Below, in pieces: positions 6,890 through 40,224 of a DNA stretch of 64,000 bases. The position numbers and the translations under genes were made by a program. The notes under the pieces are model-generated. The model had not been told where the DNA came from and did no database searches. It saw nothing but the letters and a program-made list of their open reading frames with translations. Each line of letters starts with the position of its first letter. Position 1 is the first letter of the stretch. Source of the stretch: Mobula birostris (Eukaryota); contig NC_092379.1 in assembly GCF_030028105.1 (NCBI RefSeq), positions 21,119,309 through 21,183,308 of the forward strand, given 5' to 3'.

Positions 6890-7741
6890 TCATTCAACAG
6901 CGGCGTCAGTGACAGCGGCAGGTAAAGCCTGAAGAAAATCCAGTGCAGCTTTTGGATCAAAAAAAGTACGAGGAGGAGAATTAGCAGGGAAAATTTTAAT
7001 TCTTGTCAGGTACCCCAGAGACGGAAAAAGTTTTTTATCATATGCTTGTTTCATTACCAGGGCAAATTTTGATCTTTGTTCCATTATCTCTCTTGGATCA
7101 TCTTCATAGAAGTGGAGCTCAGATTCCATAAATCTAAAAACTCTCTGTTTTCTTGCCTGTCGCATTATTTGATCTTTAAGTTTAAAGTGATGAAAGCAAA
7201 CCAGCACAGATCTTGGTTTACTAGAATCCTTCAATTTCGAGATAAACGCCCTATGTGCCCTTTCTATAGCAGGTGGCTTTGATAGAATGGTAGGAAATAA
7301 AGTGTGGAAAAGCTTACCAAAGTAAGCCGTTAGATCTCCTTCTTCAGCTCCTTCTTGCAGCCCAACAATTCTTATATTCCTTCGTCGAGACCTAGTTTCC
7401 AGGTCTATAATCTTATTTTGATATATTTCCAAATGATTTGTAGATTCAGACAACTTTTGCTTAGTTATCTTCAATTCCTCTTCGTGTGAAATAACTTGAG
7501 TTTCCAGGTCTTTAAGTTTTCCCAGAAATGACTTCATTTCATTACTATTCTTTTCCAGTTGGTCTTTAATTGATCCATTCTGATCCTTAATTGAATTCAG
7601 TGTCCGAACAATATCTTCAGCCCACGATGGCATTTCATCAGATCTTTCCTTTTGCACCTTTCCTTTCCCATTACCTATGTCACTAGGTTCAGGTAAATTC
7701 TCCCCACTTCTTGTAGACATAGACATATTGATCCCCGTCAA
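6890..7741 (-). CDS. L1 ORF1p (coiled coil + RRM + CTD), open frame of 283 aa
   Basis: LETRSRRRNIRIVGLQEGAE and IERAHR...PRSVLVCFHHFKLKDQI motifs typical of L1 ORF1. Confidence 0.88.
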   Translation of the reverse strand: MTGINMSMSTRSGENLPEPSDIGNGKGKVQKERSDEMPSWAEDIVRTLNSIKDQNGSIKDQLEKNSNEMKSFLGKLKDLETQVISHEEELKITKQKLSESTNHLEIYQNKIIDLETRSRRRNIRIVGLQEGAEEGDLTAYFGKLFHTLFPTILSKPPAIERAHRAFISKLKDSSKPRSVLVCFHHFKLKDQIMRQARKQRVFRFMESELHFYEDDPREIMEQRSKFALVMKQAYDKKLFPSLGYLTRIKIFPANSPPRTFFDPKAALDFLQALPAAVTDAAVE

Positions 7742-9129: not shown

Positions 9130-10081
9130 TGGGACCTTACACCTTTCATCTTTACTCCAAGCCTCTGGGCCTTGATAAGCAGAAGTTATGACCAGTACAA
9201 AAGAGACGGGTTACACCTGAATCCACAGGGGACAAATATCCTCGCAGACCGGTTTGCTAGAGCTGGTCAGAAGGGATTAAACAAATTTGGCAGGGGGATG
9301 GGAAATGAAGTGATAGGGTTGAGGATCAAATCATTGGTTGGCAAACAGTGTGTAGTGAGACTGCTAGCAAGAAGAAGCTGATGACTGGGTAAAATTGCAG
9401 TTATCGGGATGAGTTGCAATGTAAAAAGGGACAAAATTTTAAGATGTAATGAATACAGGACTGAAGGTGTTATATTTGAATGCACGCAGCATATGGAATA
9501 AGCTAGGTGAACTTGAAGCCCAGCGACATATTGGCATGTATGACATTGTGAGCATCTCTGAATCGTGGCTGAAAGAAGATTATAGCTGTGAGCTTAATGT
9601 CCAAGGATACACATTGTATCGAAAGGACAGGGAGGTAGGCAGAAGGCGTGGTGTGGCTGTGTTTGTAAAAAATTAAATTAAATCATCAGAAAGCAGTGTC
9701 ATAGGATCGGAAGGTGTAGAATCGTTCTGGGTAGAGCTAAGAATCTGCAAGAGTGAAAGACACTGATGGGACTTTTTACAGACCTGCAAACAGTATAACA
9801 AAGATGTGGTCTACATATTACAACGAAGGACAGAAAATGCATGTCAAAAGTGCAATGTTAAGATAGTCATCGTATGTTTCAATATGCAGGTTGATAGAGA
9901 CGGATTGCACCTGAACTTCAGGGGAACTGGATAGCTGTCTGCAAGATTTGCTGATGCTACTTGGAAGAGTTTAAACTAGTTCTGCAGGGGTGAGAACCCG
10001 AGCCCCAGGTCAGTTGGGGAAGGACCTGACCAGAAGTTAGATGTCAGGGAAGGTATTGAAAGTCACAATTGAAGTAACAGG
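9130..10081 (+). mobile_element. CR1-type LINE fragments (end of ORF1, start of endonuclease)
   Basis: YKRDGLHLN and LKVLYLNARSI...IVSISESWL motifs. Confidence 0.75.
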
Positions 10082-10321
10082 TGTTATGTTACTTCTGTTT
10101 AAACGTACCGTGGGTTAACAGTAAAGAATCATATTCTGGAAGTATTAGAAAACTTTTATTTACAGTAATAAACAAACACATCTTAACCCAGACACGTGCT
10201 GGAACATTCTGGCAATCCTGTGCATGCTGAGTGCTCTGTCCAATCATGTACTGGCACGTCATTGCATGTGATATTACCACACCTTCCTTTCCTTAAAAAG
10301 AAAAACACTTAACAATGTTAA

Positions 10322-10480
10322 TCAAAACACATCTATATAAGATAACTGAAACTCTGAAGTTGACTTTTTCTTAAAGCCTTTGCGATTCTTTCCTATCACC
10401 ACTCCCTCCTCTGTTTGGACCATGTATGATCTGGTCTGTGATAATGTGTTCCTTTTATCTTGTATCGTCACTTTGTATCC
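10322..10480 (-). pseudogene. Gypsy integrase C-terminal tail
   Basis: KVTIQDK...[18 protein letters not shown] resembles the Gypsy integrase end motif RSY.V.T..G...RNR. Confidence 0.65.
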
Positions 10481-10525
10481 TTGTCTTTCAGACAAACGTT
10501 TCCTTAGATCAGTCAATTCATGTTC
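10481..10525 (-). pseudogene. RABEP1: Captured RABEP1 fragment, part 2
   Basis: [15 protein letters not shown] versus RABEP1 EREIADLRRRLSEGQ, the direct continuation of part 1. Confidence 0.75.
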
Positions 10526-10660
10526 CACTTCCATTTGTAATGAAATACGAATCTTCTTTTCTTCATCTAATTCATTCATTAACTGTGTAATCTCTTTTTT
10601 ATGTTGAGACTTCATCATTTCAATAATACTCCTCAATTCCTTCACCTGTGCGTTCACTTC
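10526..10660 (-). pseudogene. SH3KBP1: Captured SH3KBP1 (CIN85) C-terminal coiled-coil fragment
   Basis: [45 protein letters not shown] versus recalled human CIN85 [45 protein letters not shown]. Confidence 0.85.
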
Positions 10661-10935
10661 TTATACTGTGCCCACTGTGAGTGTTCTTGCTCTAGACGGT
10701 GATGAAACTGAACCTCATATTCTCACAGTGTCTATTTCATTATTGCTTGCATTGAAGCAACCTCCTCCTGCCATTGCTTTTTCACATCATCAGTTGCCTC
10801 CCGTTTGGTCGTCTCAGACACTGCAGCTACTACTTTTATATTCTCCATGTCAGCATTTGCCTCCATGGCCTGGACCTGCAGTCGAGTTACATCACCTTCT
10901 GCCAACTGTAATGAAACATTCTGTTGCTTCAGCTC
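10660..10935 (-). pseudogene. RABEP1: Captured RABEP1 (Rabaptin-5) N-terminal coiled-coil fragment, part 1
   Basis: [90 protein letters not shown] aligns by eye to recalled human RABEP1 DLKRQNAVLQ...EMENIKAIATVSENTKQEAIDEVKRQWREEVASLQAVMKETVRDYEHQFHLRLEQERTQWAQYR. Confidence 0.88.
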
Positions 10936-11355
10936 TGTGTCACTATCCAAGACAAAAATTCTTTTCAGCAAACTAAGTCTTTCACAGGCAGATAAACCCA
11001 GAATTGACTGTACATTTTTTGGCATGGCCACAAATGAAAGCGTATGCACAATATTTTTGTGTGATACCTTTGCCACGCATGTTCCGTTAACTGGAATGTC
11101 TACACCTGAATACCCAGTCATTTTTATATTTGTCTGATGTAACTTCAGTCTTGGCTTTAAAGCATTAGACTCAGATTCTGCAAGAACATTTACTTGCAGT
11201 CCAGTATCAAGTTTTAACAGAATATTGTTTTGATTCACTTGCAACGGAATAGTCCAGTCATTCTTACTCTGTTTATTTTCACAAAGCACATCTATATAAA
11301 ATTCCTCACGTTCATCCTTAAGCACAGCATTTACTGGTTTCATTTTACTTTCCAT
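10936..11355 (-). pseudogene. Gypsy aspartic protease, fused in frame to the RABEP1 fragment
   Basis: WTIPLQVN...LKLDTGLQVNVL...ILGLSACERLSLLKR within ORF 10732-11355. Confidence 0.8.
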
Positions 11356-11369
11356 CTTTCTACTTTTAC

Positions 11370-11902
11370 AGCAGCATGAAACGTCACTGTCTCAGAAGCT
11401 TTGCAAATGCCAAAGCTTTTTCAAAATTTAAATTTTGCTCTCTCAACAGCCTTTTTCTCAGAGCATTATCTCGAATGCCACAAACGAGTCTATCTTTAAT
11501 GAGAGAGTCAATGAGCAATCCAAACTTGCATGTCTACTACGCTTTCTTAACTCAGTAACATACTGATCAATTGTTTCAGCGGCTCTCTGCACACGAGAAG
11601 AATTTATATCGCTCATACGTTAAATTACACTTAGGTATACAAAATGCTTCAAATCTGTCCATTATCGACCTTAAATTGAAATTATCTCCATCATCAAAGA
11701 CAAAATTATTATATACTTCTACTGTGTCATTCCCGATTACATAGAGCAAAAGCGCAGCTTTGATTTTTTTCAATTTTTCTTCATAATCGATCGCAGATAA
11801 ATAAAGTTCAAACTGTTGCTTGAATATCCTCCAATTCTCAGCTACATTGCCAGTCAGCTGAAGTTTTGGTAGGGGTGGTAAACCTTCCATTTTACCATTC
11901 AA
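11370..11902 (-). pseudogene. Gypsy gag, frameshifted, zinc knuckle apparently absent
   Basis: LQLTGNVAENWRIFKQQFELYL...LLLYVIG...ERYKFF, then LIKDRLVCGIRD..LREKRLL. Confidence 0.8.
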
Positions 11903-12249
11903 AGTTCAAACTTTTTTCTTCTATTTTTTTTTGATTATCTTCGATTCTCTATTCTCTCGTATTATTCTTCCAGAACTACTTCTGACACCATGTTATGTTA
12001 CTTCTGTTTAAACGCACCATGGATTAACAGTAAAGAATCATATTCTGGAAGAATTTGAGAAATTTTATTTACAGTATTAAGCAAACACGTCTTAACCCAG
12101 CCACGCGCTGGAACATTCTGGCAATCCCGCGCATGCTCAGTGCTCTGACCAGTCATGTACTGGCACATCATTGCATGTGATATCACCACAACAGGTATGA
12201 TAGGTCAGATAGTTTGGAGTGTGTATATTTTAAAGCTAAGAGTATTATG

Positions 12250-15110
12250 GGTAAGAGTGATAAGACCATAAGGTAAAGGAGCAGAAGTTGGCCATTTGGC
12301 TCATGAAGTCCGCTCTGCCATTCAATCATGGACTGATGCAATTCTTCCAGTCATCCCCACTCCCCTACCTTCTCCCCTTACCCTTTGATGCTTTGCCTAA
12401 TCAAGAATCTATCTATCTCTGCCTTAAATGCACCCATGACTTGGCCTCCACAGCTGCTTGTGACAACAAATTCCACAGATTTACCACACTCTGACTAAAG
12501 TAATTTCTCTGCATCTCTGTTCTAATGGACATCCTTCAATCTTGAAGTTGGGCCCTCTTGTCCTAGACTCCCCTACCATGGGAAATAACTTTGCCATATC
12601 TAATCTGTTGAGGCCTTTTAACATTCAGAATGTTTCTGTGAGATCCCCCCCATTCTACTGAACTCCAGGGAATACAGATCAAGAAATGGCAGACATTTCT
12701 CGTACGGTAACCCTTTCATTCCTGGAATCATTCCTGTGAATCTTCTCTGAACCCTCTCCAATGTCAGTATATCCTTTCTGAAATAAGAAACCCAAAACTG
12801 CATACAATACGCCAAGTGTGGTCTCATGAGTGCCTTATAGAGCCTCAACATTACATCCTTGCTCCCTATCCTATACCTCTAGAAATGAATGCCAACGTTG
12901 CATTCGCCTTCTTCACCACCGACTCAACCTGGAGGTTAACCTTTAGGTTATCCTACAAAAGGACTCCCAAGTTCCTTTGCACCCCTGCATTTTGAATTCT
13001 CTTTCCATCTAAATAATGATCTGCCCATTTATTTCTTCCACCAAAGTGCATAAGCAGACACTTTCCAACATTGTAATTCATTCGCCACTTCTTTTCCCAT
13101 TTCGCTAAACTATCTAAAACTCTATGCAGGCTCTGTTTCCTCAAGACTACCCACTCCTCTACCTATCTTTGTATAAACAGCAAATTTAGCCACAAATCCA
13201 TTAATCCCACAGTCCTAATCATTGACATAGAAACATAGAAAATAGGTGCAGGAGTAGGCCATTCAGCCCTTCGAGCCTGCACCGCCATTTATTATGATCA
13301 TGGCTGATCATCCAACTCAGAACCCTGCCCCAGCCTTCCCTCCATACCCACTGATCCCCATAGCCACAAGGGCCATATCTAACTCCCTCTTAAATATAGC
13401 CAATGAGCTGGCCTCAACTGTTTCCTGTGGCAGAGAATTCCACAGATTCACCACTCTCTGTGTGAAGAAGTTTTTCCTAATCTCGGTCCCAAAAGGCTTC
13501 CCCTTTATCCTTAAACTGTGACCCCTCGTTCTGGACTTCCCCAACATCAGGAACAATCTTCCTGCATCTGGCCTGTCCAATCCCTTTAGGATTTTATACG
13601 TTTCAATCAGATCTCCCCTCAATTTTCTAAATTCCAATGAGTACAAGCCCAGTTCATCCAGTCTTTCTTCATGTGAAAGTCTTGCCATCCCAGGAATAAA
13701 TCTGGTGAACCTTCTTCATACTCCCTCTATGGCAAGGATGTCTTTCCTCAGATTAGGGGACCAAAACTGCACACAATACTCCAGGTGTGGTCTCACCAAG
13801 GCCTTGTACAACTGCAGTAGTACCTCCCTGCTCCTGTACTCGAATCCTCTCGCTATAAATGCCAGCATACCATTTGCCTTTTTCACCGTCTGCTGTACCT
13901 GCGTGCCCACTTTCAATGACTGGTGTATAATGACACCCAGGTCTCGTTGCCCCTCCCCTTTTCCTAATCGGCCACCATTCAGATAATAATCTGTTTTCCT
14001 ATTTTTGCCACCAAAGTGGATAACTTCACATTTATCCACATTAAATTGCATCTGCCATGAATTTGCCCACTCACCCAACCTATCCAATTCACTCTGCATC
14101 CTCTTAGCATCCTCCTCATAGCTAACATGGCCACCCAGCTTCGTGTCATCCGCAAACTTGGAGATGCTGCATTTAATTCCCTCATCCAAGTCATTAATAT
14201 ATATTGTAAACAACTGGGGTCCCAGCACTGACCCTTGCGGTACCCCACTAGTCACCGCCTGCCATTCTGAAAAGGTCCCGTTTATTCCCACTCTTTGCTT
14301 CCTGTCTGCTAACCAATTCTCTATCCACATCAATACCTTACCCCCAATACCATGTGCTTTAAGTTTGCACACTAATCTCCTGTGTGGGACCTTGTCAAAA
14401 GCCTTTTGAAAATCCAAATATACCACATCCACTGGCTCTCCCCTATCCACTCTACTAGTTACATCCTCAAAAAATTCTATGAGATTCGTCAGACATGATT
14501 TTCCTTTCACAAATCCATGCTGACATACATCGTAAAAAGCAGCAGCCCCACACCGACCGCCGTGGAACTCCACTGGTGACCAGCAGCCAGCCAGAAAAGG
14601 ATCCCTTTATTCCCACTCTCTGTTTTCTGCTGATCAACCAAAGCTCCACCCATGCTGGTATCTTCCCTGTAACTCCACGGGCTCTCATCTTGCTTAGCAG
14701 CCTCATGTGTGCATCTTGTCAAAGGCCTTCTGAAAATTCAAGTACACCACACCTACTGGATCTCCTTTGTCTACCCTGCTTATAATTTCCTTAAAAATTG
14801 CAGTAGGTTAGTCAGGCAGGATTTTTTCCTTTCCGGAAACCGTGCTGGCTTTGGCCTATCTTGTCATGTGCCTCCAGGTACTCTGTAATCTCATCCCTAA
14901 CAATGGATTCCAACAACTTTCCAACCACTGATGTCAGGCTAACAGGTCTATAGTTTCCTTTCTGCTGCCTCCCACCCTTAAATAGTAGATAAACATTTGC
15001 AATTTTCCAGTCATCTGGTACAATGCCAAAATCTATCAAATCTTGAAAGATCGCTGTTAATGCCTCCACAGTCTCTACAGCTACTTCCTTCAGATCCAAA
15101 GGACACACAC
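12250..15110 (-). mobile_element. Stack of CR1-type LINE RT and 3' fragments
   Basis: ORF 13716-14573: QHGFVKGKSCLTNLIEFF, VYLDFQKAFD, GVPQGSVLGP, KFADDTKL. The 3' UTR is near 13230-13330. Confidence 0.88.
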
Positions 15111-27419: not shown

Positions 27420-30400
27420 CCTATTACTATTTCCTCTGCCACAGGAAACAGTTGAGGCCAGTTCATTGGCTATATTTAAGAGGGAGTTAGATATGGCCCT
27501 TGTGGCTACGGGGATCGGGGGTATGGAGGGAAGGCTGGGGCAGGGTTCTGAGTTGGATGATCAGCCATGATCATAATAAATGGTGGTGCAGGCTCGAAGG
27601 GCTGAATGGCCTACTCCTGCACCTATTTTCTATGTTTCTGTGTTTCTATGAAACTCTGCAGGCTCAGCATGAGTTGAGAGTTAATGGGCAAGTACACAGA
27701 TGATACTCAGATCGGTGGAGTTGTGGATAATGAAGTATGTTTTCAAAGCTTGCAGAGAGATTTAGACCACTTAGAAGAGTGGGCTGAAAGATGGCAGATG
27801 AAGTTTAATGCTGATAAATGTAAGGTGCTACATTTTGGTAGGACTAATCAAAATAGAACATACATGGTAAATGGTAGGGCATTGAAGAATGCAATAGAAG
27901 AGAGGGATCTAGGAATAATAGTGCATAGTTCCCTGAAGGTGGAATCTCATGTGGATAGAGTGGTGAAGAAAGCTTTTGGTATGCTGGCCTTCATAAATCA
28001 CAGCATTGAGTATAGGAGTTGGGATGTAATGTTGAAATTGTACAAGGCATTGGTAAGGCTAAATTTGGAGTATCATGTACAGTTCTGGTCACCGAATTAT
28101 AAGAAGGATGTCAATAAAATTGAGAGAGTACAGAGGAGATTTACTAAAATGTTGCCTGGGTTTCATCTCCTAAGTTACAGAGAAAGGTTGAACAAGTTTG
28201 GTCTTTATTCTTTGGAGCGTAGAACATTGAGGGGGCACTTGATAGAGGTGTTTAAAATTATGAGGGGGATAGATGGAGTTGACGTGGATAGGCTTTTTCC
28301 ATTGAGAGTGGGGGAGATTCAAACAAGAGGACATGAGTTGAAAGTTAGGGGACAAACATTTAGGGTAACATGAGGGGGAACTTCTTTACTCAGAGTGGTA
28401 GCTGTGTGGAATGAGCTTCCAACACAAGTGGTTGAGGCAGGTTTGGTGTTGTCATTTAAGTTAAATTGGATAGATATATGGACAGGAAAGGAATGGAGGG
28501 TTATGGGCTGTGTGCAGGTCGGTGGGACTAGGTGAGAGTAAGAGTTTGGCACAGACTAGAAGGGCCGAGATGGCCTGTTTCCATGCTGTAATTGTAATAT
28601 GGTTATATGGTTAAATGATATGCTACACCTCGTGAGGGCAAATGCAAAGAGATAGTACACTTTTAAGGACAAGTTCTTTAGCAGTGCTGCCGAGCAGAGA
28701 GATCTTCGGACCCAAGTTCATAGCTCCTTGAAAGTGGCTACACAGGTCAATAAGATGGTTAACAAGGATTAAGGAATGCTTGCTGTTAATAGTTAAGGAA
28801 TTGAGTTCAAAAGTCAGGAGGTTATGTTGCAACTTTATAAAACTCAGGTCAGACCACACTGAAGTACTGCATACAGTTCTTGTTGCCCCACTATTGGAAG
28901 GATGTTGAGGCTTTGGGGAGGGTGTAGAAGAGGTTTGCCAGGATGCTGCCTGGTTTCAAGGGAACATGCAATCAGGAGAGGCCACATAAACTTGGGTTGT
29001 TTTCTCTGGAGCGTTGGAGGCTGAGGGGGATTTGATAAAGGTTTGCAAAATTATGAGAGACAAAGAGAGAGTGGAGAGAGTATCGCTTTCCCAGGGTTGA
29101 AATATGTATTAACAGAGGGAATGAATTTTAGGTGAAAGGGGGTCAGTTCAAGGGAATGTGAGAGGTTAATTTTATACTCAGAGACTGGAGGATGGCTGGA
29201 ATGTATTGCCTGGTGTGGTGGTAGAGGCAAATACATTAGAGATGTTTGGGTAGGCAAGTGGATGTAGGGAAGAAGAGGGGATATGGACATGGCGTAGGTG
29301 GTAGGGATTGGTGCTTGGGTGTTTTTGATTTGCTTTATAGCTGGTTCGGCACAACAGTGCAGGCAAAATGGCCTGTGCTGTAGTAAATTATTTTGGTGCC
29401 ACATCCTAGGGGAAGGAATTTGTAGAATGTCTACAAGTTTTTTCTTAGAGCAGGTGGTGAATGAGCCCACTCGACGATTAGCTATTCTGGATTGGATGTT
29501 GTGTAATCAACCGGAATCGAGTGGAGAGTTTAAGGTAAGGGAACGCTTGGGAGCCAGTGATCATAATATGATGTAATTCACCCTGCAATTAATTTGAGAA
29601 GGAGAATCAAAAGTCAGACAGATTAGTATTACAGTGGAGTAAAGGGAATTTCAAAGGCATGAGAGGAGCTGGCCAAAAAATTGATTGGAAGGGGAAACCA
29701 GCAGGGATGATGACAGAGCAGAGATGGCTGGAGATTTGGGGAGTAATTTGAAAGGCACAACATGGATGCATCCAAAAGAAGAAATGTTCTCAAGGCAGTA
29801 TGCCACCAGGTAGCATCTAATGAAAAGAGTAAACAAACAATGATTTGGGTCAAGACCCTTCATCAGTCTGAAACTTTGACTCTTTTTCATAGATGCTGCC
29901 AGGCCTGCTGAGCTCCTCCAGCACTGTGTGTGTTACTAAAGAACCCATGGTACTACAGGAGAGATACTAGCATGGATAGAACATCCTCTGGTAGGAGGCA
30001 AAGAGTAGGAATGAAGGCAGACTTTATTAGCAGCTAGTGCCTCGTGGTGTTCCACAAGGGTCTGTGTTGGAACCGCAACTTATCACGTAAAATGTCAATG
30101 ATTTGGATTACAAAATTGATGGCTTTTAGGGCCAAGTTTGTGGATGATACTTAGTGAGGTGGAAGGGCAGATAGAGTTGAGAAAGCAGAGAGGCTACAGA
30201 AACAGATTTGGAGAATAGACAAAGTAGTGGCAGATATGATAAAGTGTTGGGAAGTGAATGGTTATACAGTTTGGGAGAAGAAATAAAAGCATAGGCTACT
30301 TCCTAAATGGAGATAAAATTCAAAAATCTGAGGTAAAAAGGGCCTTGGGAGTCCTTGTGCAGGATTCCATTAAGGTTAATTTGCAAGTTGAGTCTGTGGT

Positions 30401-35086: not shown

Positions 35087-38000
35087 TCTCATGGTCCCTT
35101 CTGGCAATCCCCCACCAGCTATTTACTTCAGGAATTGGGCCTCAATCCCGTTGTTTAATTTCCAGTCATTCCCAGGTTCCACTAACTACGCACACCTGCT
35201 TTCCATCAGAAAATGCAGAATAAAGACACTGTAATCACAAAAAGGAGCTGCCAGTTCGTTGGTCGATTCCAGTGTAAGTAACCTTGTTTCATGGTTCTTA
35301 GGACTGTCAGTTCTAAGTCTAGCATCACTCCTGGATTCTCTCCAAACCCAAGACTTCGGGTAAAGACAATCCTGGAAACTGATTCCACCCTCACTACAGC
35401 AATAACGCCTCCTGACTCTGCCCCCCCCACCCCCGCCCGTGTTCTGCACTTGGACCCGTCCACTGCCACGCCCGTGCAACAGAACGAACTGGCCATAATG
35501 AACCCAGTGGACACGGATCCCGTACAACAGGCCCTCGCCAACCAGGGCTACCTACTGGGCGCCCACGACTAACTATTTAGGGAGGTCACGGAAAACCTTC
35601 AGACGTTACCCACGAATGTTCGGAAGGTCAGTGAGCAGGTGGACCGAGTTTCCGCTTCCCTTTGTCCGTCCCCTCCAAGAACCCCGACTACCCAAACCGC
35701 ACCGCTTGGGATGGCGTCGCCCCTGGGATCAGCAACACATTTCCCTCGAGAGCCATATGTACCGGAGCCCGAACCCTACGCTGGGGAGCTAGGGAGGTGC
35801 TGGGCCTTCCTGTTACAATGCTCTCTGGTCTTTGAGCTACAGCCACGTAACTACACTTCAGATAAATCCAAGATTGTGTACATCATGGGGCTGTTACGAG
35901 GGGATGCCTTGGCCTAGGCAACCGCGATATGGGATAACCGACCAGAGGTTTGTTCCTCCTTCCCCTCCTTTGTCGCTGAAATGAGGAAGGTCTTCGAACA
36001 ACCCATTTGCAGTAAGGACGCCGCTAAACGCTTACTGACTCTTTATCAGGGTCCGCGAAGCGTAGCGAGGTATTCCATCGAGTTCCGAACCTTAGCCGCA
36101 GACTCAGGGTGGAATGATGAGGCCTTAGGGGAGGTATTTCGACAGAGTCTCTCGGACAAGATAAAAGGATGAACTGGCAGCAAGGGACGGCCCAGACTGT
36201 CAGGGTTCTCTGATCTCGCTAGCCACTAGATTAGATAATCAACTTCAAGAGCGGCTGAGAGAAAGAACCAGTCGTCCCGCTCCTTGGGGAAGCCCACGGT
36301 CCACCTTATCAGTCTCAGCCAGCCTCCCTTCCCCAGCCGCTCCAAGTGTGGCTCCTGCTCCAACAGTCCCCACCACCCTGGGGGAGGAACCGATGCAGCT
36401 GGGATGGAACTGCCTCTCCCCGGCCAAATGACTTCGGAGGTGGAGAGCTGGGGACTGTTACTATTGTGGCCAGCCAGGGCATTTCCAGGATACCTGCCCT
36501 CAGCGGCCAAAGAGGGAGGGCTCACCAGTGAAAAAGGGGGCCCTGGTGAGCCGGACAATACTCCCTTCTGCCCCCCAGACTCGGATGCAGATCCCAGCTA
36601 CCGTGAATTACCAACGACAGTCCCTGTCCCTATCTGCTTTGGTGAATTCCGGTGCCGAGGGCAATCTGCTGGACGAAGACATAGCCTCCCTGGCTGGAAT
36701 ACCTCGCGAGCTGCTAACTACCCCCATGGAGGACCGGGCCCTGGACGGAAAACTGCTGGCTTGGGTGACCCACTGTACGCCGCCCCTGACCTTGATCCTA
36801 TCTGGCAACCATCAGGAGGAGGTACGATTCAGTCTCATTCATTCACCTCAAGCCCCGGTAGTTCTAGGCTATCCATGGCTGACCCAACACAATCCCCACA
36901 TCATCTGGTCTAGCAGGAAGATAGCCAAATGGAGCCAGTCTTGCCACGCCAACTGTCTGCGGTCAGCCCCATCTCCCAGGGAAGTTACCATGACCCTGCC
37001 TGTTCCGGAACCCCTCGATTTGTCCCGCGTCCCCACAGAATACCATGACCTGGGACAGGTGTTCAGTAAACAACGGGCCCTTTCCCTGCCTCTGCACCGC
37101 CCATATGATTGTGCCATCGACCTTTTCCCTGGGGCCTCGCTACCCACCAGTTGCCTTTTTAACCTATCCCGACCGGAGAGAGAGGCCATGGAGAAATACA
37201 TTAGCGAGTCCCTGGCGGCGGGCATCATCAGGCCTTCATCCTCCCCGGTAGGCGCCAGTTTCTTCTTTGTAGAAAAGAAGGACGGGTTGCTTTGTCCTTG
37301 TATTGATTAGAGGCCTAAACAGTATAACAGTTAAGAATAAGTACCCTCTACCCCTCATTAGTTCGTCTTTTGAACCACTGCATGGAGCCACCATCTTCTC
37401 AAAGCTGGACCTTCGTAACACCTACCATCTAGTCAGGATGAGGGAGGGGGACGAGTGGAAGACGGCCTTTAATACACCTCTGGCCACTTCGAATATTGGG
37501 TCATGCCGTTTGGCCTCACCAATGCTCCCACTGTTTTTAAGCCCTAATCAATGACATACTGAGGGACTTTATTAATCGGTCGTATTCGTTTACCTCGATG
37601 ATATCCTGATATTTTCTAGCATGTCCCAAGAACGCGTCCACCATGTCGGTCAAGTCCTCCAGAGACTGTGGGAAAATCAATTATTTGTGACGGTGAAGAA
37701 ATGTGAGTTCCATGTTCCTACGATCAGCTTCTTGAGTTATATCATTGAGAGCGGGCAGGTAAGAGCAGACCCCGGGAAGATCCAGGCAATGGAAGAATAG
37801 CCTAGGCCCACGACCCGCAAACAACTTCAACGATTCCTGGGGTTTGCCAATTTATCAGAGACTACAGTCGAGTGGCGGCCCCCTTAACCGGCTTACCTCG
37901 CCTACTACCCCCTTCCGTTGGGTCTCCGAAGCTGACTCGGCGTTCACCGACCTGAAGAGGCGTTTCACCACCGCTCCCACCCTGGTCCATCCGGACCCAG

Positions 38001-40224
38001 CCCATCAATTCGTTGTTGAGGTGGATGCCTCTGATTGCAGTCCTATCCCAACGATCAAGATCAGACGAAAAGCTTCACTCCTGCGCCTTCTATTCTCTCC
38101 GACTGTCCCCCGCCGAGTGGAATTATGACGTGGGGAATTGGGAACTCCTGGCGGTCAAACTAGCATTGGAAGAATGGAGGCACTGACTGGAGGGGGCAGA
38201 ACAACCGTTTGTGCTGTGGACTGAACATAAAAACCTGGGGTATATTCAGACCGCCAAACGTTTGAACCCCCGCCAGGCCCGTTGGGCATTAGTTTTTTGG
38301 ACGGTTCAAGTTTTCCCTCAATACTGTCCAGGGTCCAAGAACGAGAAGCCAGACGCGCTCTCACGCCAATACGACTCCAAGGAGGACACTTCTTGCCCAG
38401 GGACTATCCTCCCAGTATCCTGCGTGGTTGCCACCCTCACTTGGGAGATCGAGTCTAAAGTAAAGGAAGCCCAGCGGGACGACCCCGACCCCAGCAATGG
38501 ACCCAGCAATCGCCTGTATGTGCCCGTTTCCATCAGGTCTCAGGTTCTCCAATGGGGGCGCACATCTCAGTTTGCCTGCCACCCCGGGAGTGATCGGACC
38601 CTAGCGCTCCTGAAAAAAACACTTTTGGTGGCCGCCCATGCGGGCGGATACCCGTTCCTATGTCTCGGCCCGTTCCATCTGTGCCCGGGGAAAAGCCTCT
38701 CATTGGCCACCTGCGGATTTACTTCGTCCTCTATCTGTCCCTGGTCACACATTGCCCTCGACTTCGTCACCGGTCTACTACCCCCTTCACATGGAAACAT
38801 CACCGTACTCATTGTGGTTGACCAGTTCTCCAAGGCGGTGCACTTTGCAACCCTCCCTAAACTCCCTTCTTCTCAAGAAACCACAGATCTCCTCCTCCTC
38901 CACGTCTTCCGCCTCCATGGAATCCCTGCGGACATTGTTTCCGATCGAGGTCCCCAGTTCATCTCGCAGGTATGGAAGGCCTTCTACCAGGCCTTAGGTG
39001 TATCGGTCAGCCTGTCATCCGGCTTCTACCACTGGACAAACGGGCAGACGGAACGGGTCAACCAGGTCCTGGAGGTGACGCTACGCTGTGTAACGGCAAA
39101 CATCCTGTCGATCTGGATCAATCACCTCCCATGGGTTGAGTACGTCCACAACTCTCTGGTAAGCTCTGCCATTGGGAGGTCTCCATTAGAGTGCTCCCTA
39201 AGGTATCAACCCCTGCTGTTCCCTGCACAAGAATAGGAGATTGCTGTACTGTCCGTTCAGGACCATGTTGACTGGTGTCTTAAGGTTTGGGAGGAGACAC
39301 GCATGGCCCTACTCAGATCAGCAAATCGCAATAAGAAAACGGCGGACCGACACTGGACTCCAGCGCCTGAGTACCAACTGGGGCAGATGGTGTGGCTTTC
39401 GTCCAAGGACATCCCGCTCAAGAATGAGCCTAGGAAACTCACCCCTCGCCTCCTGGGACCATTCAAGGTCGAAAGTGTTATCAATCCCGCAGCGATCCAC
39501 CTAAAATTGCCAAGATCTATGTGCATCCACCCAACTTTTCATGATTCCCAGTTAAAGCCAGTTTCCGTCATCCCCTTGTGTCCCCCGGCTGAGACTCCCC
39601 CACCTCCCCATATTGTCGACAACCATCCTGCATACACTGTCCAATGACTACTGGATGTGCGCTGTCGGGGCAGGGGTTTCCAATACCTGGTAGACTAGGG
39701 AGGGTACGGTCCAGAAAAGCGTTCCTGGGTCCCCCGCTCCTTCATCCGAGACCCTTCCCTCATCCAGGACTTTCATCGGGACTATCCAGACAGGCCTGGA
39801 GGATCACCTGGAGGCTCCCGTTGAGGGAAGGGTACTGTCATAGTCGCTTCTGGCAATCCCCCACCTTGCTAGTTACCTCAGGAATTGGGCATCAATCCCC
39901 TTGTTTAATTTCCAATCATTCCCAGGTTCCACTAACTACACACACCTGCTTTCCATCAGAAAATACAGGATAACGATCCTGTGATCACAACAAGGAGCTG
40001 CCAGTTTGTTGGTCGACTCCGGTGCGAGTAACCTCATTTCGTGGTTCTTAGGACTGTCCGTTCTAAGTCTAGTATCGCTCCTGGGTTCTCTCCAAACCCA
40101 AGACTCCGGGTAAAGACTCTCCTGGATACCGATTCCATGCTCGCTATGGCAATAATGCCTCCTGACTCTGTCTCCGTGCCCGTGTTCTGCACTTGGGTTC
40201 ATCCACCACCACGCCCATGCAACA
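35087..40224 (+). mobile_element. Tf1/sushi-group chromoviral Gypsy LTR retrotransposon, full length but decayed
   Basis: LTRs at 35087-35481 and 39836-40224. PPT gagggaagggtac. Gag (PEPYAGELGRCWAFLLQC), protease (ALVNSGAEGN), RT ([16 protein letters not shown]), integrase ([13 protein letters not shown]) and chromodomain (YTVQ*LLDVR...QYLVD). Confidence 0.92.

Follow-up and report, generated by a model that had tools for sequence, protein, structure and literature searches.

The window, which is the whole 64,000-nucleotide stretch of DNA analysed here, contains a small LTR element whose founder reads as one Gag-protease-coiled-coil-integrase tail frame of ~596 codons. The element occupies positions 10082-12190 of the minus strand, is complete with 2109 bp and is probably a dead copy from a stingray family of non-autonomous Ty3/gypsy-type LTR retrotransposons. 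Its coiled-coil part is host cargo derived from RABEP1 and SH3KBP1 (CIN85), amounting to ~155 codons in total, which stand in place of reverse transcriptase (RT), RNase H and the integrase core. It is likely that the open frame of the founder was kept by selection.

Anatomy of the window copy and its surroundings

The 5' LTR of 200 bp (11991-12190, minus strand) starts with TG, ends with CA and is 90.5% identical to the direct repeat at 10082-10281 (minus strand), which represents the 3' LTR. In an alignment with the LTRs of three relatives described below (L001, L002 and L008), the 5' LTR shows 88-91% identity. The target-site duplication ACAGG was read off the sequence at 12191-12195, with the other half at 10077-10081. 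A primer-binding site starting with TGG adjoins the 5' LTR (11973-11990, minus strand) and is conserved in L001, L002 and a further relative, L003, and the polypurine tract adjoining the 3' LTR (10282-10294, minus strand) is conserved in all copies. The window has no N runs, no part of it resembled human DNA, and within its 64,000 nucleotides no further copies of the element were found.

Three-frame translation of the minus strand gives the order gag, protease, a RABEP1 piece, the SH3KBP1 (CIN85) coiled coil, a short RABEP1 piece and the integrase tail. The gag region (11382-11890) is present as three frame pieces, delimited by this translation and by alignment to L001 and L002. It is followed by the protease up to the protease/RT linker (10933-11355), which was identified by Pfam Asp_protease_2 and gag-asp_proteas and contains the D-T-G motif at 11208-11200. 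The host cargo begins with part a of RABEP1 (10663-10932; Pfam Rabaptin, 76% identical to Narcine RABEP1), continues with the C-terminal coiled coil of SH3KBP1/CIN85 (10520-10662; PDB 5abs/2n64 with E 3e-12, and alignments to fish SH3KBP1) and ends with part b of RABEP1 (10478-10519), assigned by comparison with the RABEP1 of Narcine (P0004). The C-terminal tail of integrase together with the native stop at 10324-10322 closes the coding region (10322-10477); it aligns after the rve core (P0100, 1221-1239) and matches the integrase end of L008.

Within the open reading frame from 11355 to 10735, the retroviral-type aspartyl protease (Pfam Asp_protease_2, 2e-4) runs unbroken into the Rabaptin match (PF03528, residues 136-207, E 1.6e-22). 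Compared with the protease-RT proteins that autonomous elements encode, this protease has an identity of 49-60%. In the open reading frame from 10657 to 10325, the CIN85 coiled coil is followed in frame by the short RABEP1-like stretch and then by the C-terminal tail of a Ty3/gypsy polyprotein, and the stop lies just ahead of the polypurine tract. Here, part b of RABEP1 comprises ~14 residues and restarts 3-4 codons downstream of the end of part a in the host protein, and the ~50 residues of the tail align past the integrase core of Ty3/gypsy polyproteins. The nearest named relatives in the word search are 'K02A2.6-like' and 'transposon 412' polyproteins. The residue directly after the D-T-G motif differs in each element, being L, V and T, and A in the autonomous sibling (window 11200-11208, L001, L003 and L008).

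The protease-RABEP1 junction (J1, between 10933 and 10932), the CIN85-RABEP1 junction (J3, between 10520 and 10519) and the junction of RABEP1 with the integrase tail (J4, overlap at 10483-10478) are in frame in the window copy, as the initial annotation had read them. The RABEP1-CIN85 junction (J2, between 10663 and 10662) is out of frame in the window copy only. For this fourth junction a repair by a single added G had been proposed, which does not hold: L001 and L002 both carry four more bases at this site, and the lesion is a 4-base gap. The earlier view that this copy is dead is borne out, since RABEP1 part a contains two point stops (10734-10732 and 10725-10723) and gag has suffered three small indels as well as a 217-nt deletion between 11382 and 11381, which took out the zinc-knuckle region.

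The window in general is rich in retroelement remains. A different retroelement lies at 36528-39233 (plus strand), in the GC-richer part of the window between 34 and 40 kb. It matches RT weakly at 37309-37851, where it is 25% identical to P0006, and contains an ORF for an integrase core (rve, 1e-11). Two further ORFs at 13719-14573 (minus strand) and 27684-28370 (plus strand) match RVT_1 with E 2.6e-25 and 1.7e-4, respectively. At 6893-7741 (minus strand), an ORF of 283 aa contains a coiled-coil-like region with a weak Tropomyosin match below the cut-off, and possibly encodes a LINE ORF1-type protein. Beside the element, two stretches of 93 nt (12433-12525 and 13400-13492) are 72% alike and are probably copies of an interspersed repeat; part of this flank matches L002:1-815 at 76%.

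The founder frame across copies and families

Two further full-length copies, L001 from Hypanus sabinus and L002 from Hemitrygon akajei, were found by a word search with the protease-RABEP1 ORF, and their loci were then fetched. Both are 89-90% identical to the window copy, and all four switch points are common to these three copies, referred to here as family A. The 5-bp target duplications differ, and therefore the insertions are independent of each other. Together with the same switch points, this shows that the copies are retrotransposition products of one founder and not segmental copies. The sample consists of these three copies plus the sibling L008, and the copies examined come from at least two stingray genera. 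Within the copies the two LTRs diverge by 8.5-11%, and between the copies the divergence is 10-11%; since both values are equal, the copies point to one burst from nearly identical masters.

A copy with an intact whole frame was found among none of the three family A copies, and no close intact protein was listed in a length-free search with gag. The 207-aa ORF, P0003 and the 111-aa ORF, used in turn for word searches, returned only three element-derived proteins, the last of them adding nothing. These searches cover proteins of 0.55-1.75 times the query length, and an intact fusion protein of ~600 aa, which falls beyond the range of the first and the third and at the limit of the second, could escape them. 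NCBI gene models sit on the decayed ORFs of the elements (P0001, P0002 and P0059 at L001, L002 and L008). In one of them, P0002, an intron of the model bypasses a protease deletion of 139 nt. P0059 had been considered as a gag-only derivative and is actually a spliced gene model of L008, which joins gag to the LTR.

Instead of building a consensus, the natural stop-free stretches of each copy were placed on the three-copy alignment and the codon phase of their overlaps was compared. The overlapping open stretches are co-phased and form an unbroken chain through the three copies, which runs from the ATG of gag to the native stop. Stops and frameshifts are each confined to one or two copies; among them, no frameshift occurs in more than one copy, and a single gag stop common to two copies lies at a CGA/TGA site. 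In the tail, one position is occupied by three different codons in three elements, a sense codon and two different stops, so that the hits are independent. Furthermore, J2 is in frame in L001 and L002, so that all four junctions are in frame across family A. The initial annotation had put forward that the founder was a single ORF of gag, protease, cargo and integrase tail, and this is supported by the co-phased tiling as well as by the finding that no lesion, including stops, is common to all of the several copies. A 'common frame' of majority columns over the three copies was also tried; it is ambiguous where only two copies remain and was replaced by the tiling.

A second family, B, is represented by L003 from H. 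akajei, whose LTRs and gag are only ~72-75% identical to those of family A. This element carries a protease, ~65 residues of RT, ~125 residues of SH3KBP1, which end near the natural end of that protein, and the integrase tail. Its CIN85 piece is longer than in family A and both of its junctions are in frame.

Several further observations were made on the relation of the two families. Family A and family B are ~75% identical in gag and 88-90% in the protease, and the synonymous divergence between the A copies is larger in gag (0.21-0.24) than in protease and cargo (0.07-0.15). Judged from these values, the elements resemble mosaics, in which protease and cargo would have moved between backgrounds of gag and LTR. 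Over 137 aligned bases of the CIN85 coil (L003:6771-6908 versus window 10520-10659), L003 has the state common to the three A copies with zero differences, and each family A copy shows 6-8 private changes in the same bases. Differences in L003 amount to 7.7% of sites for the protease and 9.6% for the tail, and to 8.7% between its two LTRs. Two long frames (285-301 and 321 codons) have stayed open in this element. The unchanged CIN85 piece of L003 might reflect a late exchange between the families, a second capture from a slowly evolving host gene or constraint at the locus.

The initial annotation had given a chance of 1/27 for its in-frame junctions. This figure has to be corrected, since for the window copy alone the probability of at least three of four junctions in frame is 1/9. 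For the four in-frame junctions of family A it is 1/81 (0.012), if 1/3 per junction is assumed. Shared words of the parent sequences are, however, in the same codon phase in 0.36-0.45 of the cases for 3-4 nt and in 36-52% for 3-6 nt versus the expected 33%, because the coding sequences are purine-rich and periodic. This count scanned the two RABEP1 pieces of one natural copy as one string, which adds at most a few artificial words. With the measured rates the probability for family A becomes ~0.03, and adding the two in-frame junctions of family B lowers it to ~0.004, or to ~0.01 without the junction at which an open frame was a precondition of the protein search. The in-frame run is suggestive of selection on the open frame, based on few events and on a finding that was chosen for its frames.

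Origin of the parts and possible selection on the frame

A length-free search with the gag of the related locus L003 returned 18,315 relatives including full Ty3/gypsy polyproteins, of which P0068 and P0100 have the domain order gag, protease, RVT_1, RNase H and rve. The sibling L008, 4 kb long and from Hypanus sabinus, matches the three family A copies with 86-91% identity in LTRs, gag and protease. It also has RT, RNase H and the larger part of an integrase, in the Ty3/gypsy order of gag, protease, RT, RNase H and integrase, and is itself decayed. The window copy is without RT, RNase H and the integrase core. From its sequence, L008 appears to represent the parental and helper type, where help in trans is what an element of this kind may have given. 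Mid-length gag relatives (534-760 aa) scanned for foreign domains are ordinary truncated gag-protease-RT proteins. At L007 from hake, examined for its integrase tail, the element is interrupted and extends past the end of the locus.

The parental protease/RT linker is visible in L008 and L003, and J1 lies three residues into this linker. J4 lies within the C-terminal integrase region of the parental sequence as given by L008. Microsimilarity amounts to 3 nt at J1, at least 4 nt at J2, 8 nt at J4 (L008 integrase versus the RABEP1 side) and 4 nt at the 3' junction of family B, where the values at J2 and J4 are partly inferred since for RABEP1 the sequence at J2, J3 and J4 comes only from the protein of a distant ray. 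Part a of RABEP1 crosses an exon-exon joint of the host gene without an intron: the host exon in L004 ends with ...AIMK followed by a GT donor, and the element continues into the residues of the next exon as in Narcine RABEP1. This indicates, from the one joint checked, that the cargo derives from a spliced mRNA. Microsimilarity and intronless cargo together fit microsimilarity-guided template switching (PMC5131818).

J1 (10932-10933; L004:1030) lies at most 5 nt from the 5' end of the host RABEP1 exon, for which the chance is roughly 3%. A splicing-based 5' junction instead of a template switch could account for this position. An origin from a splice donor is, however, not supported, as no GT donor is present at the junction in L003 or L008.

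Based on these parts, we infer the following course of events. The founder would have derived from an autonomous element of the L008 kind, when reverse transcription switched templates at short shared words, going from the integrase end of the element RNA to spliced RABEP1 mRNA, from RABEP1 to SH3KBP1/CIN85, back to RABEP1 a few codons upstream and finally to the element again at the protease/RT linker. These switches would have swapped RT, RNase H and the integrase core for ~155 codons of host coiled coil. Everything required in cis stayed in the product: the two LTRs with the adjoining primer-binding site and polypurine tract, and the gag region. RNA started from the 5' LTR may then have been packaged and reverse-transcribed by the proteins of the sibling via these cis signals, and the polymerase and integrase of the sibling would have copied the founder in trans in a single burst, leaving the 5-bp target duplications, before all known copies decayed. 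Its own frame, if a fusion protein was actually made, would yield Gag and protease joined to ~155 residues of host helix.

Selection was examined by dN/dS between the copies using the Nei-Gojobori method. The values are 0.26-0.49 for gag, 0.6-1.1 for the protease, 0.70-1.03 for the cargo (149-153 codons) and 0.5-1.1 for the integrase tail. For the cargo, this is indistinguishable from neutral decay in a test to which the single-burst history leaves little power. Due to the single burst, the copies hold almost no information on selection before insertion. In the first RABEP1 exon, no protein replacement is common to all three copies compared with two host sequences, which places the capture recently relative to the burst. 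The initial annotation had supposed that the founder ORF was selected as a polyprotein. Of this, the single frame of the founder stands, and the cargo values give no sign of such selection. Structurally, a crude scan of the 3.5-residue hydrophobic phase passes J2 without a break and J3 with approximate continuity, and an AlphaFold single-sequence model of a natural open stretch (mean pLDDT 55) places helices through J2, J3 and J4.

For the preserved frame, several explanations have to be weighed against each other. The cargo may be a passenger, acquired by chance template switches without any role and spread via the cis signals of the element, with frames that fitted by chance aided by the codon-periodic, purine-rich coil sequence. 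This is a realistic possibility, although short of an even chance: a cargo dN/dS near 1, the raised in-phase rate of shared words and the choice of the finding for its fitting frames all agree with it, and multi-gene chimeras with mixed frames are known, for example Bs1 with one of three pieces out of frame (PMC5131818). A purely passive cargo, on the other hand, leaves four of four junctions in family A and two of two in family B as an improbable coincidence and has to accept that the frame reaches exactly to the native stop; moreover, the low dN/dS of gag indicates that at least gag was under coding constraint in this lineage. A tentative alternative is that the founder was selected since a Gag-protease with host oligomerising coils was useful, either for holding molecules together or for co-assembly with helper particles. 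In this case the in-frame junctions, including those around the longer CIN85 piece of L003, the low joint chance, the protease domain with its D-T-G motif kept whole and the fact that both cargo pieces are coiled-coil segments, with helices that the crude phase scan and the low-confidence model extend across the junctions, would find one common explanation, for which the gag-pol fusion of the IAP 1-delta-1 element, acting in cis, may be a precedent by analogy (PMC6466679). Nevertheless, the neutral values of the cargo speak against it, the cargo protein was near-identical to host RABEP1 at the burst, leaving too little time for a trace of selection, and L003 was found via a protein search, which favours open frames.

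In-frame junctions would follow equally from selection on the open frame as such and are therefore not specific to a useful cargo. Here, the frame itself would be selected, for example through avoidance of the decay that an early stop and a long 3' untranslated region trigger, or through Gag still being made in cis on its own RNA, and the identity of the cargo would be irrelevant. This fits the tiling, in which no stop interrupts the frame between the gag ATG and the native stop by the polypurine tract, the lack of protein-level constraint on the cargo and the single-ORF polyproteins of the autonomous relatives; it is still doubtful as a full account, as it gives no reason for the coiled-coil nature of both cargo pieces or for the presence of a CIN85 coil in two families. 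That the sequences belong to a host chimeric gene of RABEP1 type and not to a mobile element is hardly credible. The NCBI names, 'rab GTPase-binding effector protein 1-like' for P0002 and uncharacterised protein for P0001, would agree with a host gene, but each copy has LTRs, its own target duplication, gag and protease, a different locus and many private lesions. Taken together, it is likely that selection kept the frame of the founder open. It is conceivable, with considerable reservation, that beyond this the coiled coils served the element by multimerising in place of the lost Pol region. It would be rather unlikely that host helices forming dimers or trimers replaced Pol in gathering Gag-protease, with the CIN85 coil being favoured in two families, and we regard it as equally speculative that the short element would make a protease-active, self-assembling Gag and ride on the enzymes of its sibling.

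Relation to known systems

Acutely transforming retroviruses are replication-defective, helper-dependent viruses that carry, in the position of pol, sequence from host mRNA joined in frame to Gag (Gag-X). In contrast to these, the stingray element has neither an oncogene nor an envelope, gives no indication of infectious spread, is germ-line and intracellular, and has kept its protease. Elements of the TR-GAG type are short non-autonomous LTR elements, which have kept gag and are without a polymerase. Unlike these, the stingray family also keeps the whole protease and the integrase tail and carries host cargo.

In animals, LTR-mediated retroposition has been described to proceed by microsimilarity-guided template switching (Tan et al., 2016, PMC5131818). 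The stingray family resembles these chimeras in that a sense, intron-less host mRNA replaces part of the internal ORF, that microsimilarity is present at the switches, that more than one parental gene is involved and that the product was re-copied with the same switch points (PMC5131818). It differs from them by its nested RABEP1-CIN85-RABEP1 coiled-coil fragments, by a frame kept through the integrase stop, by a cartilaginous fish as host and by copies that are old (~10% LTR divergence) and not polymorphic. Similar to the maize element Bs1 (Elrouby and Bureau, 2001 and 2010), as far as the accounts given in PMC5131818 and PMC7264820 describe it, an LTR retroelement carries pieces of several unlinked host genes in a hybrid ORF and exists in few copies with common switch points. 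According to the same accounts, Bs1, which belongs to a plant, is reported to be a functional chimeric gene and has one of its three host pieces out of frame, whereas the founder described here was all in frame and no copy is intact (PMC5131818, PMC7264820). The mouse IAP 1-delta-1 element is an internal-deletion derivative with an open frame for a novel gag-pol fusion, which out-amplifies the full-length element (PMC6466679). It shares with the stingray family the non-autonomous state and the origin as a deletion product with an open frame for a fusion protein, which for the stingray family is read from the sequence alone. IAP 1-delta-1 contains no host sequence and its action in cis was shown experimentally (PMC6466679), whereas in the stingray family host sequence fills the gap.

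In the searchable papers, no literature linking RABEP1 or SH3KBP1 with a retrotransposon in the sense of a capture was found. The family thus presents a dated, multi-copy, nested capture from two genes in a vertebrate group without such events in these papers. If the open frame was truly selected, it would show in nature how a defective retroelement makes good the loss of a protein function by using parts of its host, and would also offer a clean example from a cartilaginous fish of exon shuffling by template switching of reverse transcriptase. Even on an ordinary reading, the elements are of value for annotation, as the NCBI models label their decayed ORFs as host genes. The kind of event, LTR-mediated gene capture, is already known; the stingray family is a new case of it, notable for the nested capture of coiled coils from two genes and for the fully preserved frames.
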